A DNA stretch of 63,954 nucleotides, counting the filler, from Neoconidiobolus thromboides FSU 785 (taxonomy: Eukaryota; Fungi; Entomophthoromycota), in assembly GCA_025603075.1 (NCBI GenBank). It is 9 parts of 9 records of this genome, joined end to end, with 100 filler letters (N's around TTAATTAATTAA, not from the genome) between each part and the next. Parts side by side here need not be neighbours in the genome. Positions count along the whole stretch, not along the records: positions 1 to 14,853 come from MU626601.1; 8 more parts are not named here. One strand, written 5' to 3'. The notes beneath the pieces are model-generated. The model ran no database searches. It had not been told where the DNA came from and was given only the letters and a program-made list of their open reading frames with translations. Within the stretch, counting starts at the first letter, position 1. Every line of letters starts with the position of its first letter. Positions 4,001-13,620 of this stretch are shown piece after piece. A program made the position numbers and the translations under genes.

Positions 4001-5448
4001 AATGAACAGCAAAGTAAAAAACAACGAGTAAAAGAAGAATGTGATGGATTCAATGAAAATATTCGACAATTAGAGCAACAACTAGGAAATTGTAAACAAA
4101 AATTATTATTGATATCAATTAAAGTACAAGAATGTCAACGAAAGTTAAATCAAAAATTGAATTTAATTAATTCCAATAATAAAATTATTACAGCTAATGA
4201 AACTGTTTTGAGTAAATTGGATGCGGAAAGATCTTCTATTATTAGACGTTGTAAGTTGGAAACTTTACCTCTTCCTTTAAGAGCTGGACAAACTTTAAAT
4301 AGATTTGATTTGATTCAGGTAAATAAAATAATGAATCTAAATGGTTTAGATATTTATCTTATTTTAGGGGGATCGTCGAGATACAGGTAGAGACTATGAA
4401 CAAATGGAAAACAGAAGAATTAAAAGAAGTGATTGGCAACTTAAAATTGAATTTCAATCTATTACTCAAGATATGAGAAGAGTAAATTTTTATTTTATTT
4501 TATTTTATAAAAAAGAAATCAAAATATTAATTAATTTATTATTTTACAAAAACAGAAAGATTACGAAGAAGAAATGAGAAAATTAGATGAAAAAATTAAC
4601 CAATTAAGCAACGAATTGGATAAAATGGCACCTAATCTTAAAGCTGCTTTAAAGTAACCTATTTTATTATTAAATTTAATTATTTATATATTTTAATTAA
4701 TAAAATTTATTTAGATTTAATGATGCACGTAAAAAATCGAATCAAACCGAAAAAGAGTTTAATCAAACAAGGCAATATATGACTGAATTAAGAAGTCAAT
4801 TTAATCAAGTTAAAAATGAAAGGTAAAAATAGAGTAATTCGATAATAAATATTAACAACTAAATCCTTTATTTAGATACAATCACTTTTACAAAGCATTT
4901 GAACACATCCGTAATGCTATCAATCCCATTTATAAAGAGTTAACACGTGGAAGAGCCTTCCCCATGGGTGGTACTGCTTATTTAAGTTTAGAAAATAGTG
5001 AAGAGCCATACCTAGAAGGAATAAAATACCATGCAATGCCCCCAATGAAACGCTTCCGTGACATGGAACAATTATCCGGTGGGGAAAAATCGGTAGCTGC
5101 CTTAGCTTTATTATTTGCTATTCATTCTTTCCAACCAGCTCCATTTTTTGTATTAGATGAAGTAGATGCTGCTTTAGATAATTTTAATGTACATAAAGTG
5201 GCAAGTTATTTAAGAAAATATTCTAGTCCAGATGTAGAAAAACAAACACAGTTTTTGGTCATTTCATTAAAGAAAGGATTATTTGAAAGAGCTAATTCAC
5301 TTGTTGGTGTTTGCAGAGATAGAGCTAAAAATTCTTCAATGGTGTTAACGTTGGATGTAAGTTATTTATTTTTATGCTTTTGATTATATATTAATAGATT
5401 TTTTAGTTGGAACAATATGATACTGGTATTGCTGGCGAAGGTCATTAA
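1087..5448 (+). CDS. SMC1: Cohesin subunit SMC1, multi-exon
   Basis: Starts [16 protein letters not shown]. Walker A GPNGAG|KSN is split by intron 1193-1246. Hinge region [12 protein letters not shown], signature [15 protein letters not shown] and Walker [13 protein letters not shown] are present. The last exon follows intron 5357-5406 and ends at TAA 5446-5448. Confidence 0.96.
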
Positions 5449-5671
5449 ATAAATGGATTGTAAAGATAGCAATAAATTGAAAGTAATTTAAATAATTTAA
5501 ATTTAACTTTGATTATGTTTTAACAATTTATTTTTTATAATTATCAAAGATTAACATGTTAAATTAATTTAAGATATTTTATAATTAAATTTAAAATTTG
5601 ATATCATAATAACAACTAATAATATATCATTTTTAATATAAAAATCCACTTTATTTCCCATTTCAACTTGA

Positions 5672-7228
5672 TTAAATCTTTGCTTTCTTACCAAAGAAAT
5701 CGACCATTTTTCTTCTTTGAATTTTTCCAGTGGCTGTCTTTGGTAACTTATCAGTAAAATAAATTTTCTTTGGGACTTTAAACTTGGCCATTTTGAGTTC
5801 ACAAAAGTTTTTAATTTCTTGTTCTGTAACTTTTTGTCCTTCCTTAACTTTAACCACTGCATTCACTTCTTGACCATATTTTTTATCGTCTACTGCAAAG
5901 CATACCGCTTCCGCAATTTTACTATGTTGTAATAATACACCATCCACTTCTAGAGGTGATATTTTTTCACCACCACGATTAATTAATTCCTTAATTCTAC
6001 CGGTTAAGAAAAGATAACCATCCTTATCAAATTTACCTTGATCTCCTGTTCTAAAATAACCTTCCAAAGTAAATGATTCTTGATTAGCTTTGATATTATT
6101 AAGATAACCTTTAGTAACATTTTCTCCTTTAATACATACTTCTCCTTCTTCTACTTCTTTACCTTCAGAATCTAATATTTTAATTGATACACCTTGAGGA
6201 ATTCCTACTGATCCTGGTTTTTGTTGATTAAGAGATAAAGGGTTACTCGTCATTTGATGGGCGGCTTCGGTCATAGCATAAGCCTCTAAAACTGGTGCTT
6301 GAAACTTATTTTTTAAATCCTCAAATGTCTTAGGTGCTAATGAAGAAGAACATGAACGAATAAATCGAATATTAATCTTTTTTTCTTGTTTAGGAAATGG
6401 TATATTTAATAATATTTGATGAATAGTAGGTACTGCTGAATACCAAGTACATTCATAATTTCCAAAATCTTCCCAAAATGTAGTAGCGGAAAATTTAGGT
6501 GGAATGATACAATGACCACCTGATAAAAGTGTAGAAAATAAAGCACCAATTAAACCATGAACATGAAACAACGGCATTACAATATAACTTTTATCATTGG
6601 AAGTTAAGTGATAAGTATTAATAATGTTCTTTAATGTAGTGACTATATTTTTATGAGTTAATGGCACCGCTTTTGGTTGACCAGTAGTACCCGATGTATG
6701 TAATAATAAAGCCACGTCAGAAGGTATTGGTTTGATATTTCTACTTTTATCCTCATAAATCTTATTTGTATTATTCCCATTCCAAGGAGTTAATTCCACT
6801 TTCTCATTATTCCATTTTAATATTAACAAATTTAAATTCAATTTTTTAATTACTTTTAAAATGGGAATATCATCTGAAACGAATAAATTTTCATGTAATA
6901 TCACTGTTTTTGAATTAGAATCTTTTAAATAAAATTCGAATTCAGTGCTAGTAAATGTAGCATTTAATGGACAGGCAACCCCTCGAAGTTGGACAATGGA
7001 TAAGAAAGTGAGTACAAATTCAATACTATTATCACATAATAAGGTTACTCGATCATTGGAAGAGAGTTGAGTGTAAGTATAAAGCTGAGAACTTAAGGAA
7101 GAGAGTTGGGTTTGTAATTGATTGTAAGTCAAAGTGACATCTTTTGCTTTAACATGGGCTTTAGTGTTGGTAAGTGCAGGACGATTTACATCACTAGGGG
7201 TTAATAAATCAAGTAAAGTGAGGGCCAT
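5672..7228 (-). CDS. PCS60: Peroxisomal acyl-CoA synthetase, oxalate--CoA ligase (Pcs60/AAE3-like)
   Basis: AMP-binding LHTSGTTGQPKAVPLTH, MPLFHVHGL, YAMTEAAHQM, RTGDQG and GRIKELINRGGEKISP motifs. The C-terminal AKI resembles a PTS1 variant. Confidence 0.85.
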   Translation of the reverse strand: MALTLLDLLTPSDVNRPALTNTKAHVKAKDVTLTYNQLQTQLSSLSSQLYTYTQLSSNDRVTLLCDNSIEFVLTFLSIVQLRGVACPLNATFTSTEFEFYLKDSNSKTVILHENLFVSDDIPILKVIKKLNLNLLILKWNNEKVELTPWNGNNTNKIYEDKSRNIKPIPSDVALLLHTSGTTGQPKAVPLTHKNIVTTLKNIINTYHLTSNDKSYIVMPLFHVHGLIGALFSTLLSGGHCIIPPKFSATTFWEDFGNYECTWYSAVPTIHQILLNIPFPKQEKKINIRFIRSCSSSLAPKTFEDLKNKFQAPVLEAYAMTEAAHQMTSNPLSLNQQKPGSVGIPQGVSIKILDSEGKEVEEGEVCIKGENVTKGYLNNIKANQESFTLEGYFRTGDQGKFDKDGYLFLTGRIKELINRGGEKISPLEVDGVLLQHSKIAEAVCFAVDDKKYGQEVNAVVKVKEGQKVTEQEIKNFCELKMAKFKVPKKIYFTDKLPKTATGKIQRRKMVDFFGKKAKI

Positions 7229-7537
7229 TGTTTAGATTGTATATGATTATTATAAAATTTAATAGAATTTAATCTGTAAAAAATTTCAAGTTTTAAGAGA
7301 TAAGTAATTGATGAGGTTATTTATAGTAGTTATCGCGTTATAGAAAATTTTGGAATAAATGAAATTATGACCAAATTCGTATAGTAGTTAAATAAATTTA
7401 CTTCTAAATTGAGTTATTTATTAAGATTTATTTTTAGTATTATCAATTGATAAGTGTCAGTTTGATTCATAAGTTTAAGTTGATTGTGATTGTATTTTAA
7501 ATTTTTGTTTCTTTTAGAATTTAATAAAGTATGAAAA

Positions 7538-8852
7538 ATGACTCAAAAAATCAACCGAAGTAATGATAATAACAAACATAATAAAAATAAAGATAAAAAT
7601 GAAAATACTTTCAAATACCCAATAATTCATACTTTACCTATTCATCCAGATGGTGATTACATGTGGTTAATTTATGAAGTTATAAAAGATTTGAAAAAAT
7701 ATGTAACATTATTGTTCTATCAATATCATCTGAATAAAAACTCAAGGAAAAGAAAACAAGTCAAATCACAACAAAAATATATAAATACAAAAACAAATAT
7801 TTATCAAAGTTGTATTATTTATCAACAATTAAGACTGGGAAAATGTAAGATTGAATTAAAATATCAAGGAGAAGGTATAAAGTTTCGAGTTAAAGAAAAG
7901 ACAACGATGAGATTCTTTTATCATTTTGGTAATTTTGGTAAATTGAGTTATTTCTTTAAAAAAGAACCAAGGTTAATTCAAGGTAATAATAATAATAATA
8001 ATAATTTTTATAACAATAAGCATAAGGAAAGATTTATTAATAATATATTGATATTTATAGATAATGAAGAATATAATTTAGACTTATTAGAAGTTTATTT
8101 TTTAAAAAAGGGATTTGAAGATAAAATACAAATTAAGGATAATATTGGTGTAAGTTATATAAACTAATTATAATAATAATGTTTTTATTATATAATTTTA
8201 TTAGGTAACTTGGACTTCAACTATGTTATTTCATCTAGGTTATAAATTATACTCTGATAAATTTGTAAATGAATATTTAGTTTATCATTATTTTCGTTCT
8301 AATGGCTGGGTAGTCAAAAACGGTTTAAAATTTGCAACTAACTTTGGTAATTTTAATACTTGTTTTAATGTTTTATTTTATTTAATATTATTATTATATA
8401 TTATTAATATAAAATATTAATATGAATTTATTTTAGTTTTATATAAAGATGGTCCAACTTATCAACATTCAAAGTAAATTATTAAGAATTAGGTCAAAAT
8501 GAGTTTTATAAGACTAATACTTTGTTATCAGATATGCAGTTATTATTAAATCAATTAATAATATTAACGATATCATATTGAGTTGGAAAGACTTAATTCA
8601 GTATACCAGATTAGCATCACAAATTAAAAAAGTAAGTAAATAATAATAATCATATATTATTATTATAATCATATATTATAATAATATTAATATTATAATT
8701 TAACTTAATTTATATAGGAATTATTATTATGTTTTGTTATAAAACCAAAAGAAAATAGAATAGATAATATTAACATTAATGAAAATCAACTAAATTTATT
8801 TAATATTAAAGTTATTAATATTCATCGTTGGGTACCTGAAAAGAATCGATAA
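7538..8852 (+). CDS. SEN2: tRNA-splicing endonuclease catalytic subunit Sen2, multi-exon
   Basis: Spliced reading gives YHYFRSNGWVVKNGLKFATNF|VLYKDGPTYQHS...SWKDLIQYTRLASQIKK|ELLLCFV...HRWVPEKNR*. The Tyr/His/Lys triad positions are present; stop at 8850-8852. Confidence 0.85.
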
Positions 8853-8858
8853 TATTTA

Positions 8859-11051
8859 TTAATAATTAATAATAATATTAATCTCATTATTAGTATCAAT
8901 TGTATCTAATAAAATAGTTAAAAGTGGGTATTTGTTATTCGAATAATTAAATTGATGTAATGGATTATTATCACTAAATAAAATAGATTTTGGTGGAATT
9001 GATTGATTATGAATTAATAATTGATATTTTCTTGATGTTGATTTACCGTTATAATCTCCAGTTACTGCATTTATTTTCAATTTAATTGAAGATGAAGTTA
9101 CTGTCATTTCATATTTTTGCAAAGTAAATTGATTGTTTTTAAATTGTCTTGTTACTAAATCATCTTCATATAATTTATATTCAACTGTATCGTTATTGTT
9201 ATTATTTATAAAATTAGATGGATAAATATCTAATATTATTAAATCATTTAATTTACGTTGCTTATAACTATTAATTGAATTCCACATTGGTATAATAGAA
9301 TTTTCTTTGACAAATAAAGGTAATATATCTAATGGAGCATTATAATTGTTCAATGTGATTGGCCCAGTATATATTTTATTATTCCAATAGTCAATCCATT
9401 TACCTTGGGGTAAATAAATATTATCTCTTTTTAATTCATTTTTATAAACTGGTGCTACTAAAAATGAATTACCAAACATATATTGATATTTCATCAACTC
9501 TTTATCATAAGTTGATTTGTCATCAGGATATTCTAATAACATAGAACGAACAATTGGAATCCCAGTTTGATAAGCTTCATAAGCTAATGTATAAATATAA
9601 GGTAATAATTGTTCTCTTAATTTTAAGTATTTTCTATTGATAGAAGTACCAGGTTCACCAAATCTCCAAGGTTGTTTGTCTTTTGATGCCCAACCTGAAA
9701 TTGACATAAATACAGGTGTAAATACTTTAAATTGTAAATCTCTAATAAAGGTATTAGGACTACCTTCAAATATACCATCAATATCACCAGCTGTATAAAC
9801 TTGACTTGATAATCCAGAACCATGAATTGTTGGTATATGAAATCTTATGTTTTCCCATGTACCATATTGATCTCCTGTCCATTGAACAGAACACTTTTGT
9901 ACACCTGCCCATCCTTCCACTTGCCAAACAAATCCTCTTGCTGTTGAATAATCTTGTATGCCATTATAAGCTTCATTACAAGCTTTAAATCCAAATTCAT
10001 AACCCCTACCTACCCATTTAACATCTAACTTTCTAACTCTTACACCCCATTTACCAACTTCGTTAGGTTGATTATTTAAATTAGATTCTGTCCATAATCC
10101 TAATGTAATATTTCTTTTATTCAAAGATTGATTTGTTTCATTTAATTGTGTATAACCACAGCCATAACCATCATTAACTAACATCCAACCAATTGGTAAA
10201 TCATTTTCAATATAACCATCTGCTACTTTAGTAGAATCAATTAATGTATCTTTTGGTGGTCTACCATTAGCAGTCTTAGAATAACAATCAGCATCTCCTA
10301 ATTCCAAACCATAAATCGGGGGCATAAATGGACGTCCAGTTAAATAAGTGTATTTATTTAGTATTTGTTTATAATTTCCAATAAAATAATAACTATCTAA
10401 TTTATTTTCATTATGAATTAATTGTATTTGATTTTTAAAATTATAATTTCCTGGTGAAAATGTATTTCTAAAAATACCGTATCCTTTAGATGACATCATA
10501 AATGGCACAGGGTTAGGGTTACCTCCATCATTCCAATTATAACTTACAGTTATATTAATATTACTATCTTTATGATTAAATCGTCCATTTTGCATACCAC
10601 CGCCAAAGAAATGTTCATCTTTATCATAAATAAAAGATTGTATTGTAGAAGAAGTATCAATATTAATGGGATTATTTTCATTAAATAAAATAATATCATT
10701 ACTAATTAATTGAAATTTTAAAGGAGTTTTATTGATCTTTAATTGAGCATTGATATTCTTATTAGTTAATATAATTTCTTTAGCAGTGTTGGTGTAAATA
10801 ATAGCTGGTGTTTCAAAAATATCAGTAACAGTTATTTTTGTCTTTAATTCTTCAAATTGACTATTAGATAATACAGCTTGAATTCTTAATATTTGATCTT
10901 CTAACCAAGTAATTTTCAATTTACTATTATTATCGCTAACAATTAAATATTGATTGTTATTAACTATTTGGATATCTTTAAAATTTCCAATAGATGTAGA
11001 GAATACCAAATAAGGCAAGAATAAAAGGACAGAAAATAAGAGAGATAACAT
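8859..11051 (-). CDS. Secreted GH31 glycoside hydrolase, bacterial CPE1046/Nag31-type (putative alpha-N-acetylgalactosaminidase), intronless
   Basis: Signal peptide; HFFGGGMQNGRF, GWMLVNDGYGCGY, RKLDVKWVG (nucleophile Asp), WTGDQ (acid/base Asp), FHIPTIHGSGLS and YLKLREQLLPYIY motifs. GH31 is secure; the subfamily call comes from recalled motifs. Confidence 0.8.
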   Translation of the reverse strand: MLSLLFSVLLFLPYLVFSTSIGNFKDIQIVNNNQYLIVSDNNSKLKITWLEDQILRIQAVLSNSQFEELKTKITVTDIFETPAIIYTNTAKEIILTNKNINAQLKINKTPLKFQLISNDIILFNENNPINIDTSSTIQSFIYDKDEHFFGGGMQNGRFNHKDSNINITVSYNWNDGGNPNPVPFMMSSKGYGIFRNTFSPGNYNFKNQIQLIHNENKLDSYYFIGNYKQILNKYTYLTGRPFMPPIYGLELGDADCYSKTANGRPPKDTLIDSTKVADGYIENDLPIGWMLVNDGYGCGYTQLNETNQSLNKRNITLGLWTESNLNNQPNEVGKWGVRVRKLDVKWVGRGYEFGFKACNEAYNGIQDYSTARGFVWQVEGWAGVQKCSVQWTGDQYGTWENIRFHIPTIHGSGLSSQVYTAGDIDGIFEGSPNTFIRDLQFKVFTPVFMSISGWASKDKQPWRFGEPGTSINRKYLKLREQLLPYIYTLAYEAYQTGIPIVRSMLLEYPDDKSTYDKELMKYQYMFGNSFLVAPVYKNELKRDNIYLPQGKWIDYWNNKIYTGPITLNNYNAPLDILPLFVKENSIIPMWNSINSYKQRKLNDLIILDIYPSNFINNNNNDTVEYKLYEDDLVTRQFKNNQFTLQKYEMTVTSSSIKLKINAVTGDYNGKSTSRKYQLLIHNQSIPPKSILFSDNNPLHQFNYSNNKYPLLTILLDTIDTNNEINIIINY

Positions 11052-11949
11052 TATTATTTATGTATTTTTTGTTGAAAGCTAAAGAGTTTGAGTTTTCTTT
11101 TATACCTTTTACTTTTTTACTTTTTTACTTTTTAAATGCATTTTTTATTGAACTATAATGCTTAATAGAATTAATTACTCATTTTATTAAATTTAAAAAT
11201 CTATTTAAAGACTAACTCAGTTTAACTTATAATATTACATCTATTTATTTTAGTATGCTACTTTGAATCTAACTAAGTTATTTTTTCGAAAATTCCTATA
11301 TTTAATTACTGACTTTTAAAATAATTATGTATGATAAAATGTGATATTATCATTCAAATAACCTTATGATAAGTCATTATATAAAGTTTAAATTAAAATA
11401 AAGTGTTATGATTGGATTGAATTGAACAAGTCTAATATTACTACTTAACTGTTCTCTATAACAATGTTTTTAAAATATTAATTTTTGATTTATGTTAATA
11501 CAATAGCATAAATACAAAACTATTTCGTATAATACCCGTCATTCCTAGAATCTCATCAACAGAGCATCTACTCTTATTACCTTTATAGTGTTGTCTAATA
11601 GAAATAAAAAAAGCAAATATTTTAATACTAACTTTAAATTATTAATCTTTCATTTTATTATATAGTTATTTTACATTCTTTTCACTTATGATTTATCATT
11701 AGTTTTTTATTCGTTAAGCTAAATAAAACAATAAACCTTTTAAATTTTATTCAAGTCAAAGTTATTTTTCTTATAATGATAGCTTAAACAAAGTTAAATA
11801 TAAGTATAATTTAAAGGTCAATGCCAAGGGTTTATTGAGTATAATGGGTGTAAAGCTATAAACTTATTATAGTTATAAGTATATTATTTGTCTTTTAAAT
11901 TGTTTGATTTTGTTGATAATAAAATAAATTGATTGAATTTAGCCTAATT

Positions 11950-12201: not shown

Positions 12202-13620
12202 CTATAACTTCTCTTTAGCTAATACATCTCTTAAATTAATATTAGCAATGGATTCTGAATAACAAGTCGAATAAGGATAATGACTTAAATCTAATTTCAT
12301 ATTTTCTATTTTAGGTACAAATAAGGTAACAGGTTCCGTCATAGTTTTGGGTATACTTTCTAATAATTTATGTTTCTTATCCATCTTTCTCTTATAATAA
12401 ATCAAAAGTAAAATAAACACAATTAATAAGATAAAAAATAAACTTCCAATGATGCCTGCAATCATTGGAATATTAGTGGGATTATCCTTTTCCTTGTTCA
12501 TTGAGTTGGCATTGTTTGTATCTTCTTTTCTTATATCACTCTTTTCTATATTTGAGCTATTATTTCCAGGTACATTATCTACCTCTTCCCAAGTTCTAAT
12601 ATTAAAAATCCTTGTTTGCCCCGAACTCTCAGAATCCTTTCTACTACCAAAAGAAGTAATAACTAAATCCTTATATGAAATCAAACAACTTAACTCTAAG
12701 ACTTGAAAGTTGACAACTCTTTTACTCCATTTGAAGGTAACCATATCTAACATATAAAATACGTTTTTATCACCTTCTTTGGATGTAAACAAATACAATA
12801 TGTCCCTTATAACTTGAAACTTTGAATAAAACCTTTCATTCGGTATTTCACCATTCAAGGATATATCCTTAATCTTATTATCACTGAAGTTTACTTCTTT
12901 TATTTTATTCATTGGTAGTTTGTTACCATTTTCACTAGTACCACCTAATAGATATAATTTTCCATTGTATACAAAACATGTTTTCATTGAATCAAGCAGT
13001 TCAATATCCGTTTTTTGGAATATTCCAGTTTCGATATTATATAATATTAGAGGAAGAGTTGTTGATTTAGTGATCTTATTATGTGAGATAGATTGAAAAC
13101 CATATAGTATAAGTTGATTGTTTACTATATCATTTTGTAGAAAATTAAAAATAATTCGGTTTTCAAGACCCAAATTAGTATCGAATTTTAATGCTCTTAA
13201 AAAGGTTAATAATTTAGTATTAGGTCCGTTATCAATAGTCCAGCTATTTTTACTAATATCATAATACGCTGTCCCAAATGGTCCACTTTCTCTAAAAATG
13301 GCCATAATTTTGTTTTCACCCTTACTACTGAATCTGAATACACTTGGTTGTATCATTGTTTGATTTAAATTTGATGGAGCAAGTTTATCCCAAGGTGCTA
13401 TTCGGTTACTCAATTTAAAGCCCTTGTTTAAATCTAGCTTGTAGACTACTTGATTCATATTATAATTTTTAAAATTTTTCAAATAATAATAACCACCAAT
13501 ATAATAAATTGCGTCGTTTACTGATATACATGCTCCTTGTGTCACTCGGGGGTTGATAATTTCTGAGGTTATAGAAAGTAAGTGGAATAAAAAAAACAAA
13601 AAAACAAAAGCCATAAACAT
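12202..13620 (-). CDS. Secreted Kelch/galactose-oxidase-like beta-propeller with single TM helix and cytoplasmic tail (paralog B), intronless
   Basis: Signal peptide; Kelch-like AIYYIGG and KLYLLGG motifs with W-terminated blades (NSWT, FKWS, RTWE); N/S-rich stalk; TM IAGIIGSLFFILLIVFILLLIYY followed by KRK. Confidence 0.8.
   Translation of the reverse strand: MFMAFVFLFFLFHLLSITSEIINPRVTQGACISVNDAIYYIGGYYYLKNFKNYNMNQVVYKLDLNKGFKLSNRIAPWDKLAPSNLNQTMIQPSVFRFSSKGENKIMAIFRESGPFGTAYYDISKNSWTIDNGPNTKLLTFLRALKFDTNLGLENRIIFNFLQNDIVNNQLILYGFQSISHNKITKSTTLPLILYNIETGIFQKTDIELLDSMKTCFVYNGKLYLLGGTSENGNKLPMNKIKEVNFSDNKIKDISLNGEIPNERFYSKFQVIRDILYLFTSKEGDKNVFYMLDMVTFKWSKRVVNFQVLELSCLISYKDLVITSFGSRKDSESSGQTRIFNIRTWEEVDNVPGNNSSNIEKSDIRKEDTNNANSMNKEKDNPTNIPMIAGIIGSLFFILLIVFILLLIYYKRKMDKKHKLLESIPKTMTEPVTLFVPKIENMKLDLSHYPYSTCYSESIANINLRDVLAKEKL

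Follow-up and report, generated by a model that had tools for sequence, protein, structure and literature searches.

The enzymes assigned so far to glycoside hydrolase family GH31, subfamily 18 (GH31_18), act only on alpha-linked N-acetylgalactosamine (GalNAc) (PMC11790493, PMC13096917), and most of those tested release GalNAc that is linked to peptide (PMC11790493). Nag31A of Enterococcus faecalis (6m76, 6m77, 7f7q, 7f7r) has been solved in several forms, and its hydrophobic pocket takes the N-acetyl methyl group of GalNAc, according to the passage in PMC9491548 that cites this work. Soil Streptomyces carry CAZy-curated GH31_18 enzymes, which are filed under animal glycan and proteoglycan targets (PMC11475409). 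In Lepidoptera, and only there, a GH31 gene (Nag31 of Bombyx mori, DpGH31 of Danaus) was acquired from an Enterococcus donor about 65-145 million years ago (PMC3606386). Here, we describe a gene of this type from a fungus, located at positions 8859-11051 (minus strand) of a joined stretch of 63,954 nucleotides (the window) from the Neoconidiobolus thromboides FSU 785 assembly GCA_025603075.1, and encoding a 730-residue protein that is predicted to be secreted. To our knowledge, the known fungal alpha-N-acetylgalactosaminidases (alpha-GalNAcases) are GH27 enzymes, and we know of no characterised fungal enzyme of the GH31_18 type. No report of a fungal GH31_18 clade was found in the literature searched, and GH31 is not mentioned in the text and the examined supplements of a systematic survey that screened 44 early-diverging fungi, Conidiobolus coronatus and R. 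globosum included, for genes transferred between kingdoms (PMC11291939).

A first-pass annotation of the window had read the gene as a bacterial acquisition of the fungus, related to the Clostridium and Enterococcus enzymes. The analysis below supports the enzyme type and a bacterial origin, and points to a different donor and a much older event. As a whole, the best explanation is that the gene entered fungi from bacteria in one ancient transfer, was then inherited vertically and lost many times, and that the product is a GH31_18 alpha-GalNAcase, an account that we regard as probable.

Domain architecture and predicted activity

The open reading frame (ORF) runs uninterrupted from ATG to stop and is the longest in its piece of the window, where the GC content is about 25% throughout. 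Its features are as follows:

8859..11051, minus strand: whole gene, 730-aa predicted secreted GH31 (subfamily-18-type) glycosidase, single exon (ORF, Pfam, PDB match, AlphaFold, RNA-derived contigs)
10992..11051, minus strand: codons 1-20, probable cleavable signal peptide MLSLLFSVLLFLPYLVFSTS (hydrophobicity, low predicted local distance difference test (pLDDT) values, similar N-termini of orthologues)
10446..10919, minus strand: N-terminal beta-sandwich domain, aa 45-202 (PF13802, E 3.6e-16)
9585..10379, minus strand: catalytic (beta/alpha)8 barrel, approximately aa 225-489 (PF01055, Nag31A alignment, model)
10023..10025, minus strand: D343 codon, predicted catalytic nucleophile in RKLDVKWVG (aligned with Nag31A D455; codon checked)
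9870..9872, minus strand: D394 codon, predicted general acid/base in WTGDQ (aligned with the Asp of Nag31A WTGDQ; codon checked)
9291..9563, minus strand: proximal C-terminal beta-sandwich, aa 497-587 (PF21365, E 5.3e-25)
9006..9239, minus strand: distal C-terminal domain DUF5110, aa 605-682 (PF17137, E 2.5e-12)

The intronless ORF that had been proposed is real, being collinear with bacterial homologues and free of joints in RNA-derived contigs, and every motif quoted for it was found in the translation: IGWMLVNDGYGCGY at aa 287-300, RKLDVKWVG at aa 340-348 and WTGDQ...RFHIPTIHGSGLS at aa 391-415. All four GH31 Pfam modules, i.e., PF13802 (Gal_mutarotas_2), PF01055, PF21365 and PF17137 (DUF5110), score above their curated cut-offs; the PF01055 match itself covers aa 328-489 only, and the N-terminal edge of the barrel near aa 225 was taken from the alignment with Nag31A and the secondary structure of the model. 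The protein had also been described as secreted. Its N-terminus MLSLLFSVLLFLPYLVFSTS is strongly hydrophobic (12-residue Kyte-Doolittle mean 2.0-2.7), residues 1-20 form the sole low-pLDDT stretch of the AlphaFold model, ahead of the first strand of the first beta-sandwich, and the N-termini of the fungal orthologues are likewise hydrophobic. Hydrophobicity and model together suggest that the N-terminal 20 or so residues probably act as a cleavable signal peptide, in line with the secretion predicted earlier.

When all PDB sequences were searched, the three best matches were E. faecalis Nag31A and its mutants (E 5e-101, 342 bits), followed by the GH31 enzyme FjDex31A at 196 bits and by classical alpha-glucosidases and glucosidase II with no more than about 100 bits. 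AlphaFold, given an alignment of 43 homologues, produced a model with a pLDDT of 93 and a predicted template modelling score (pTM) of 0.93; this alignment was used in place of one of 11 fungal sequences alone, which gave a pLDDT of 61 and a poor barrel. The top Foldseek matches of the model are the four Nag31A entries (query TM-score, TMq, 0.90), with an E of 8e-72 against 3e-59 for the next structure and a TMq of 0.77-0.90 for GH31 structures overall. Membership of GH31 is evident from the four-domain architecture in Pfam matches and model and from the presence of both predicted catalytic Asp in the alignments, and by sequence as well as by fold the protein is closer to the characterised GH31_18 than to other GH31 subfamilies. 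The Nag31A-type alpha-GalNAcase assignment is supported, with Nag31A as the best solved relative on both counts.

The two proteins share the same four-domain core as well as the conserved elements K-x-D-V-x-W-V-G, WTGDQ, NDGYG and RFHIPT, and the motifs flanking the active site are conserved between them in the alignment. In the alignment, D343 corresponds to Nag31A D455, which the entry titles of 7f7r (D455N) and 7f7q (D455A) name as mutated. D394 aligns with the Asp of WTGDQ in Nag31A, D508, which is the acid/base in that enzyme, and is predicted to have this role in the fungal protein. Five residues, D294, K341, D343, W391 and D394, are invariant among 43 diverse fungal and bacterial sequences. 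Nag31A differs in an insertion of about 30 residues between N-domain and barrel, which splits the alignment in two and is absent from the fungal protein, and in its C-terminal FN3/CBM32 modules and LPXTG anchor, whereas the fungal protein is a bare catalytic core with a predicted eukaryotic signal peptide. With typical fungal GH31 alpha-glucosidases and alpha-xylosidases, the protein has the fold and the retaining mechanism in common; canonical GH31 glucosidases carry nucleophile motifs of the WxDMNE type. The fungal GH27 alpha-GalNAcases, in turn, catalyse the same predicted reaction and belong to an unrelated family.

Because of the match to Nag31A, the conserved catalytic Asp and the literature on GH31_18, we consider it likely that the protein is a retaining alpha-GalNAcase. 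The enzyme would then be a secreted retaining exo-glycosidase of the GH31 subfamily-18 type that frees alpha-linked GalNAc by double displacement, with D343 as the predicted nucleophile and D394 as the predicted acid/base. A candidate target would be the core GalNAc-Ser/Thr of trimmed mucin-type O-glycans.

Fungal relatives and probable bacterial ancestry

The closest homologues of the protein are from N. thromboides (65% and 60%) and C. coronatus (61% and 52%), and the next fungal ones are from five Chytridiales (about 49%) and Calcarisporiella thermophila (49%). The non-fungal homologues next in rank are proteins of Bacillaceae and actinomycetes with 1000-1250 aa and about 44-54% identity. 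A search with a profile of the fungal sequences ranked the 10 known fungal members first (1137-1258 bits, bacteria 1024 or less), added Polychytrium, and returned Streptomyces as the genus of many close relatives. An exhaustive hidden Markov model (HMM) search of 1.84 billion cluster representatives yielded 3484 relatives at E < 1e-30, and the further eukaryotes among the listed representatives looked up by name were chytrids only (a second Chytriomyces gene, Entophlyctis, and a second Podochytrium gene). In none of the homologue, profile and exhaustive searches was a non-fungal eukaryote found near the fungal clade. The carriers comprise the chytrids Rhizoclosmatium, Chytriomyces, Obelidium, Siphonaria, Podochytrium, Entophlyctis and Polychytrium, the Conidiobolus group, and Calcarisporiella, a very patchy distribution of about ten species in three phyla when all fungal proteomes are searched. 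Two GH31_18-type genes of C. coronatus lie in opposite orientation with about 5.4 kb between them (locus L005, 2737-4586 (-) and 10001-12178 (+)); the product annotated for one of the two (593-618 aa) is without the distal C-terminal domain, and its gene model may be truncated.

The main trees were computed in IQ-TREE under LG+C20+F+G4 with posterior mean site frequencies (PMSF) on 45 and 49 trimmed sequences. In both, the fungal homologues form one clade with 100/100 support (15 sequences in the 49-row tree). In the 49-row tree, the sister group of this clade is an actinomycete clade (100/98), Bacillaceae branch off next (100/100), and Bacteroidota, Planctomycetota and Clostridium sequences lie farther out. 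Sequences that show the two-part alignment of Nag31A, one of them named as an Erysipelotrichaceae protein, form the outgroup. The recipient clade (100/100) is therefore nested among bacterial sequences, in a larger clade that itself has 100/100 support and is in turn surrounded by bacterial outgroups. The closest non-fungal proteins (e.g., of Virgibacillus, Bacillus pakistanensis, Kribbella and Streptomyces; 45-54% identity) are collinear with the fungal one over 730 aa and sister to the fungi in the maximum likelihood (ML) trees, and they bear extra modules of the carbohydrate-binding and Ig-like kinds (PF00754, PF08305, PF10633), which are absent from the fungal proteins. An ultimate bacterial origin, as claimed in the first-pass annotation, is supported by this nesting. 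The Clostridium/Enterococcus-type source named there is not, since the nearest bacteria are soil actinomycetes and Bacillaceae and the Nag31A-type sequences lie in the outgroup.

Within the fungal clade, Calcarisporiella plus the Conidiobolus group are sister to the chytrids, with support of 97/87 and 100/99 (45 rows) or 93/75 and 93/95 (49 rows), which is the accepted order of these fungal phyla. A constraint that groups the Conidiobolus group with actinomycetes to the exclusion of all other fungi lowers the log-likelihood (lnL) by 63 units and is rejected by the approximately unbiased (AU) test (p = 3e-6). FastTree runs likewise recovered one fungal clade, with the two longest chytrid branches in the wrong place. 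A second chytrid acquisition, as implied by a FastTree of 101 rows that set Entophlyctis and the second Podochytrium gene outside the fungal clade, was rejected: PMSF put both in the chytrid subclade with 100/100 support, and the FastTree placement is treated as long-branch attraction. These two paralogues (P0274, P0302) have terminal branches of about 1.4-1.5, which may reflect fast evolution or neofunctionalisation. The Entophlyctis cluster includes fragmentary and 1476-aa models, and P0240, on a branch of 2.4, is unplaced.

Gene structure and base composition differ between the carriers. The Neoconidiobolus and C. coronatus GH31 genes are single exons, the Rhizoclosmatium orthologue has one intron of 63 nt (GTATGT..AG) that contains a stop codon, and the Calcarisporiella orthologue has four frame-shifting GT..AG introns of 65, 73, 87 and 62 nt. 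The GC content of the orthologues tracks that of the host, with about 26-38% in the AT-rich genomes of the Conidiobolus group and 47% in Rhizoclosmatium and Calcarisporiella. The congruent topology, the introns of the orthologues and the host-tracking GC content together lead us to propose that the gene was transferred once, and long ago, into an early ancestor of the fungi. The donor would have been close to the soil lineages of actinomycetes and Bacillaceae, whose enzymes carry extra CBM32/NPCBM-type modules, and the transfer is most likely older than the divergence between Chytridiomycota and the terrestrial fungi. The gene would then have been inherited vertically and duplicated locally, would have acquired introns in some lineages and would have been lost from the majority of fungi. 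The earlier annotation had set capture against nesting in a broadly distributed, vertically inherited fungal clade; the clade does look vertically inherited, and it is patchy rather than broadly distributed.

The lepidopteran gene offers the nearest eukaryotic parallel: in both cases, a bacterial GH31_18-type gene was fixed and is expressed and intronless in a eukaryote. The fungal clade, in contrast, stems from another, soil-bacterial sub-branch and extends over three fungal phyla. With soil actinomycetes and Bacillaceae, and not the Enterococcus/Clostridium gut branch, as its nearest bacteria, the fungal event is independent of the lepidopteran one, and the span of three phyla implies that it is much older.

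Integration and expression at the locus

Logan contigs of four sequencing runs were mapped over 5400-11300, where they show presence and splicing, not expression level or transcript ends. GT..AG joints at 8149/8205, 8345/8436, 8473/8532 and 8631/8718 occur in three of the runs and are absent from the DNA run, which implies that these three derive from RNA. The RNA-derived contigs cover the GH31 ORF at 8718-10269, 10230-10660 and 10737-11000 with no joint inside, and the gene is therefore transcribed and unspliced. In run X4, the RNA-derived depth is about 570 over 9441-10269 and drops to some 1-60 in the 5' third of the ORF (10325-11051), which could reflect a fragmented assembly, 3'-biased coverage or an internal start. 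Contigs of the DNA run overlap across the ORF and both flanks over the whole mapped interval. GC at third codon positions (GC3) is 12.6%, and relative synonymous codon usage (RSCU) correlates with that of the neighbours at r = 0.92, so that codon use is wholly host-like and follows the extreme AT-rich codons of the host. With the DNA contigs, the spliced and fungal neighbours and the host-like codons taken together, the gene is physically integrated and not contamination; it is native to a Conidiobolus-like (Entomophthoromycotina) genome, and it is expressed. A dictyostelid origin, considered because of the GC content of 25% and of poly-Asn runs, was rejected in view of the homologue search and of the fungal relatives of the AMP-binding neighbour. 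Two neighbouring genes are defined by these data:

7538..8858, plus strand: convergent neighbour gene with four introns, 8150-8204, 8346-8435, 8474-8531 and 8632-8717 (RNA-derived contigs)
5672..7228, minus strand: Pcs60-like acyl-CoA synthetase (AMP-binding) gene, unspliced (Pfam; RNA contig 5550-7281 without a joint)

The four introns of the convergent neighbour measure 55, 90, 58 and 86 nt, and their spliceosomal nature marks the locus as eukaryotic; a Pfam search of the first exon gave no match. An RNA contig of this gene extends into the 3' part of the GH31 ORF, to 9470 or 9677, which probably means either that the two convergent transcripts share their 3' regions or that the assembler joined them. 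The named matches of the AMP-binding gene are mostly Pcs60-like proteins from early-diverging fungi (Massospora 59%, Glomeromycotina, Basidiobolus). Its rank-1 match, P0366, is a 761-aa protein labelled as from the plant Rumex salicifolius, on a 50-Mb contig and with 47% identity; it tops the bit-score list through its length and may be a fusion or a mis-annotation, and the remaining hits are nearly all from fungi. In runs X6 and X8, two contig variants cover the AMP-binding gene (5742-7153), one of them with many mostly transition differences, which points to two alleles, two strains or a close paralogue. Beyond this gene lies an SMC gene with several exons, the last long ORF of which ends at 5383. 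Downstream of this ORF, the RNA contig of run X4 over the AMP-binding gene contains one more GT..AG joint, at 5482/5550 (67 nt, plus strand), which is absent from the DNA run and may point to a further 3' exon of the SMC gene or to an intron in an untranslated region (UTR). Upstream of the GH31 gene, at 12202-13620 on the minus strand, is a 472-aa Kelch-repeat ORF, in which a weak, below-threshold 'RIFIN' match was dismissed as most likely a low-complexity artefact.

The description of the surroundings as intron-rich is correct for the convergent gene and the SMC gene and fails for the directly adjacent AMP-binding gene. As this fungal gene is unspliced as well, the lack of introns in the GH31 gene is not diagnostic of transfer.

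Competing accounts and biological meaning

Much of what first attracts attention in the gene would fit a scenario in which this fungus alone recently took up a Clostridium/Enterococcus-type Nag31 gene, in parallel with the silkworm, and kept it to strip insect mucin-type O-glycans: it is intronless, its motifs match Nag31A, bacterial proteins are with 50-54% identity nearly as close as the chytrid orthologues, and a lepidopteran GH31 gene without introns is known to stem from Enterococcus (PMC3606386). Against this, Chytridiomycota, the Conidiobolus group and Calcarisporiella have one fully supported clade in common, a separate origin of the Conidiobolus lineage is rejected (AU p = 3e-6), and Nag31A-type sequences fall in the outgroup, Nag31A itself scoring 342 bits compared to about 780 for the nearest bacteria. 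Moreover, codon use and composition are host-like, orthologues in two other phyla have introns, and the neighbouring AMP-binding gene is intronless too. A recent capture of the gene by this fungus is thereby effectively excluded, and the fuller scenario with its insect mucin role is correspondingly very improbable. The opposite extreme, in which no gene was transferred into fungi and an old eukaryotic or fungal gene has bacterial relatives through deep ancestry or fungus-to-bacterium transfer, would explain why the fungal subtree agrees with fungal phylogeny, why some orthologues have introns and why composition is not anomalous. We give it equally little credence, as the fungal clade sits many nodes deep in bacteria, with actinomycetes, Bacillaceae, Bacteroidota, Planctomycetota and Clostridia as successive outgroups, as the homologue, profile and exhaustive searches placed no other eukaryote near it, and as the other known eukaryotic member, in Lepidoptera, is itself a documented bacterial transfer (PMC3606386). 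A stronger competitor assumes one bacterial transfer into a single fungal lineage, e.g., chytrids on arthropod remains, and subsequent spread from fungus to fungus into the Conidiobolus group and Calcarisporiella. It explains the presence in about ten species of three phyla without many losses, the carriers partly share the arthropod-remains niche (PMC12115818), and the window shows no synteny with the GH31 loci of Neoconidiobolus or C. coronatus. Nevertheless, the two halves of the fungal clade are reciprocally monophyletic and match the species tree, neither being nested in the other (with the moderate support of the deepest nodes), and branch depth within the clade equals that between bacterial phyla, which makes such a spread rather unlikely.

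A single ancient transfer is thus the preferred account of the origin, and several observations weigh against it or against the activity attached to it. At least ten separate losses would be needed within the fungi; the gene was judged absent from other fungi on the basis of protein collections searched with listing cut-offs, below which fungal homologues could have escaped; the deepest fungal split is moderately supported (93/75, 93/95; 97/87); and several rows of the trees, the window protein included, deviate in amino-acid composition. On the side of function, identity to Nag31A is only about 30-40%, the fungal clade and its immediate bacterial sisters include no assayed enzyme, and the protein was assigned to GH31_18 through its nearest neighbours. 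A GH31_18 enzyme that cleaves pNP-alpha-GalNAc is inactive on the natural mucin substrates tried, which were mucin, Tn and fetuin (PMC13096917). The same history could accordingly be combined with another substrate, namely an alpha-linked GalNAc- or Gal-type glycan such as microbial GalNAc exopolysaccharides or wall polymers in place of peptide-linked core GalNAc. The low identity to assayed enzymes and the enzyme inactive on mucin speak for this option, as do the closest relatives, which are soil bacteria that meet no mucins. Since every characterised GH31_18 is an alpha-GalNAcase and most tested ones free peptide-linked GalNAc (PMC11790493), since the catalytic and adjoining motifs are shared with Nag31A, and since the Streptomyces GH31_18 enzymes are curated under animal glycan and proteoglycan targets (PMC11475409), we consider the other-substrate option a minority prospect, with perhaps a quarter of the weight. 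The ancient transfer of an alpha-GalNAcase gene is retained as the preferred account.

What the enzyme might be used for is suggested by the fungi that carry it. Of the chytrid carriers, Chytriomyces, Obelidium, Siphonaria, Podochytrium and Entophlyctis belong, like Rhizoclosmatium, to the Chytriomycetaceae. Chytrids baited with arthropod exuviae and chitin are Chytriomycetaceae and Polychytrium, with Rhizoclosmatium and Polychytrium mentioned by name (PMC12115818), and the Conidiobolus group is arthropod-associated (C. coronatus, PMC12387763). As the chytrid carriers are exuviae specialists, a role of the enzyme on arthropod glycoproteins is plausible, the shared niche being circumstantial and confounded by phylogeny; the secretome text of the exuviae study does not mention GH31 (PMC12115818). 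Taken further, the gene might have come from soil bacteria before the chytrid split and been kept almost only in fungi that feed on arthropods or their remains, as a niche gene that strips O-linked GalNAc from cuticle and exuviae glycoproteins beside the chitinolytic machinery, a tentative proposal that we think is more likely wrong than right.

The enzyme class is known and bacterial genes for carbohydrate-active enzymes (CAZymes) are common in early-diverging fungi, which renders the finding useful rather than surprising. It demonstrates that an intronless, bacterial-looking gene can mislead: the transfer here is common to three phyla and, for this reason, probably very old. With an orthologue that is intronless in one lineage and has one to four introns elsewhere, the clade provides a small natural series for the study of intron gain in transferred genes. 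Finally, the overlap of the carriers with exuviae specialists gives rise to a testable hypothesis, according to which O-glycan trimming may contribute to the decay of chitin particles and, possibly, to insect infection.

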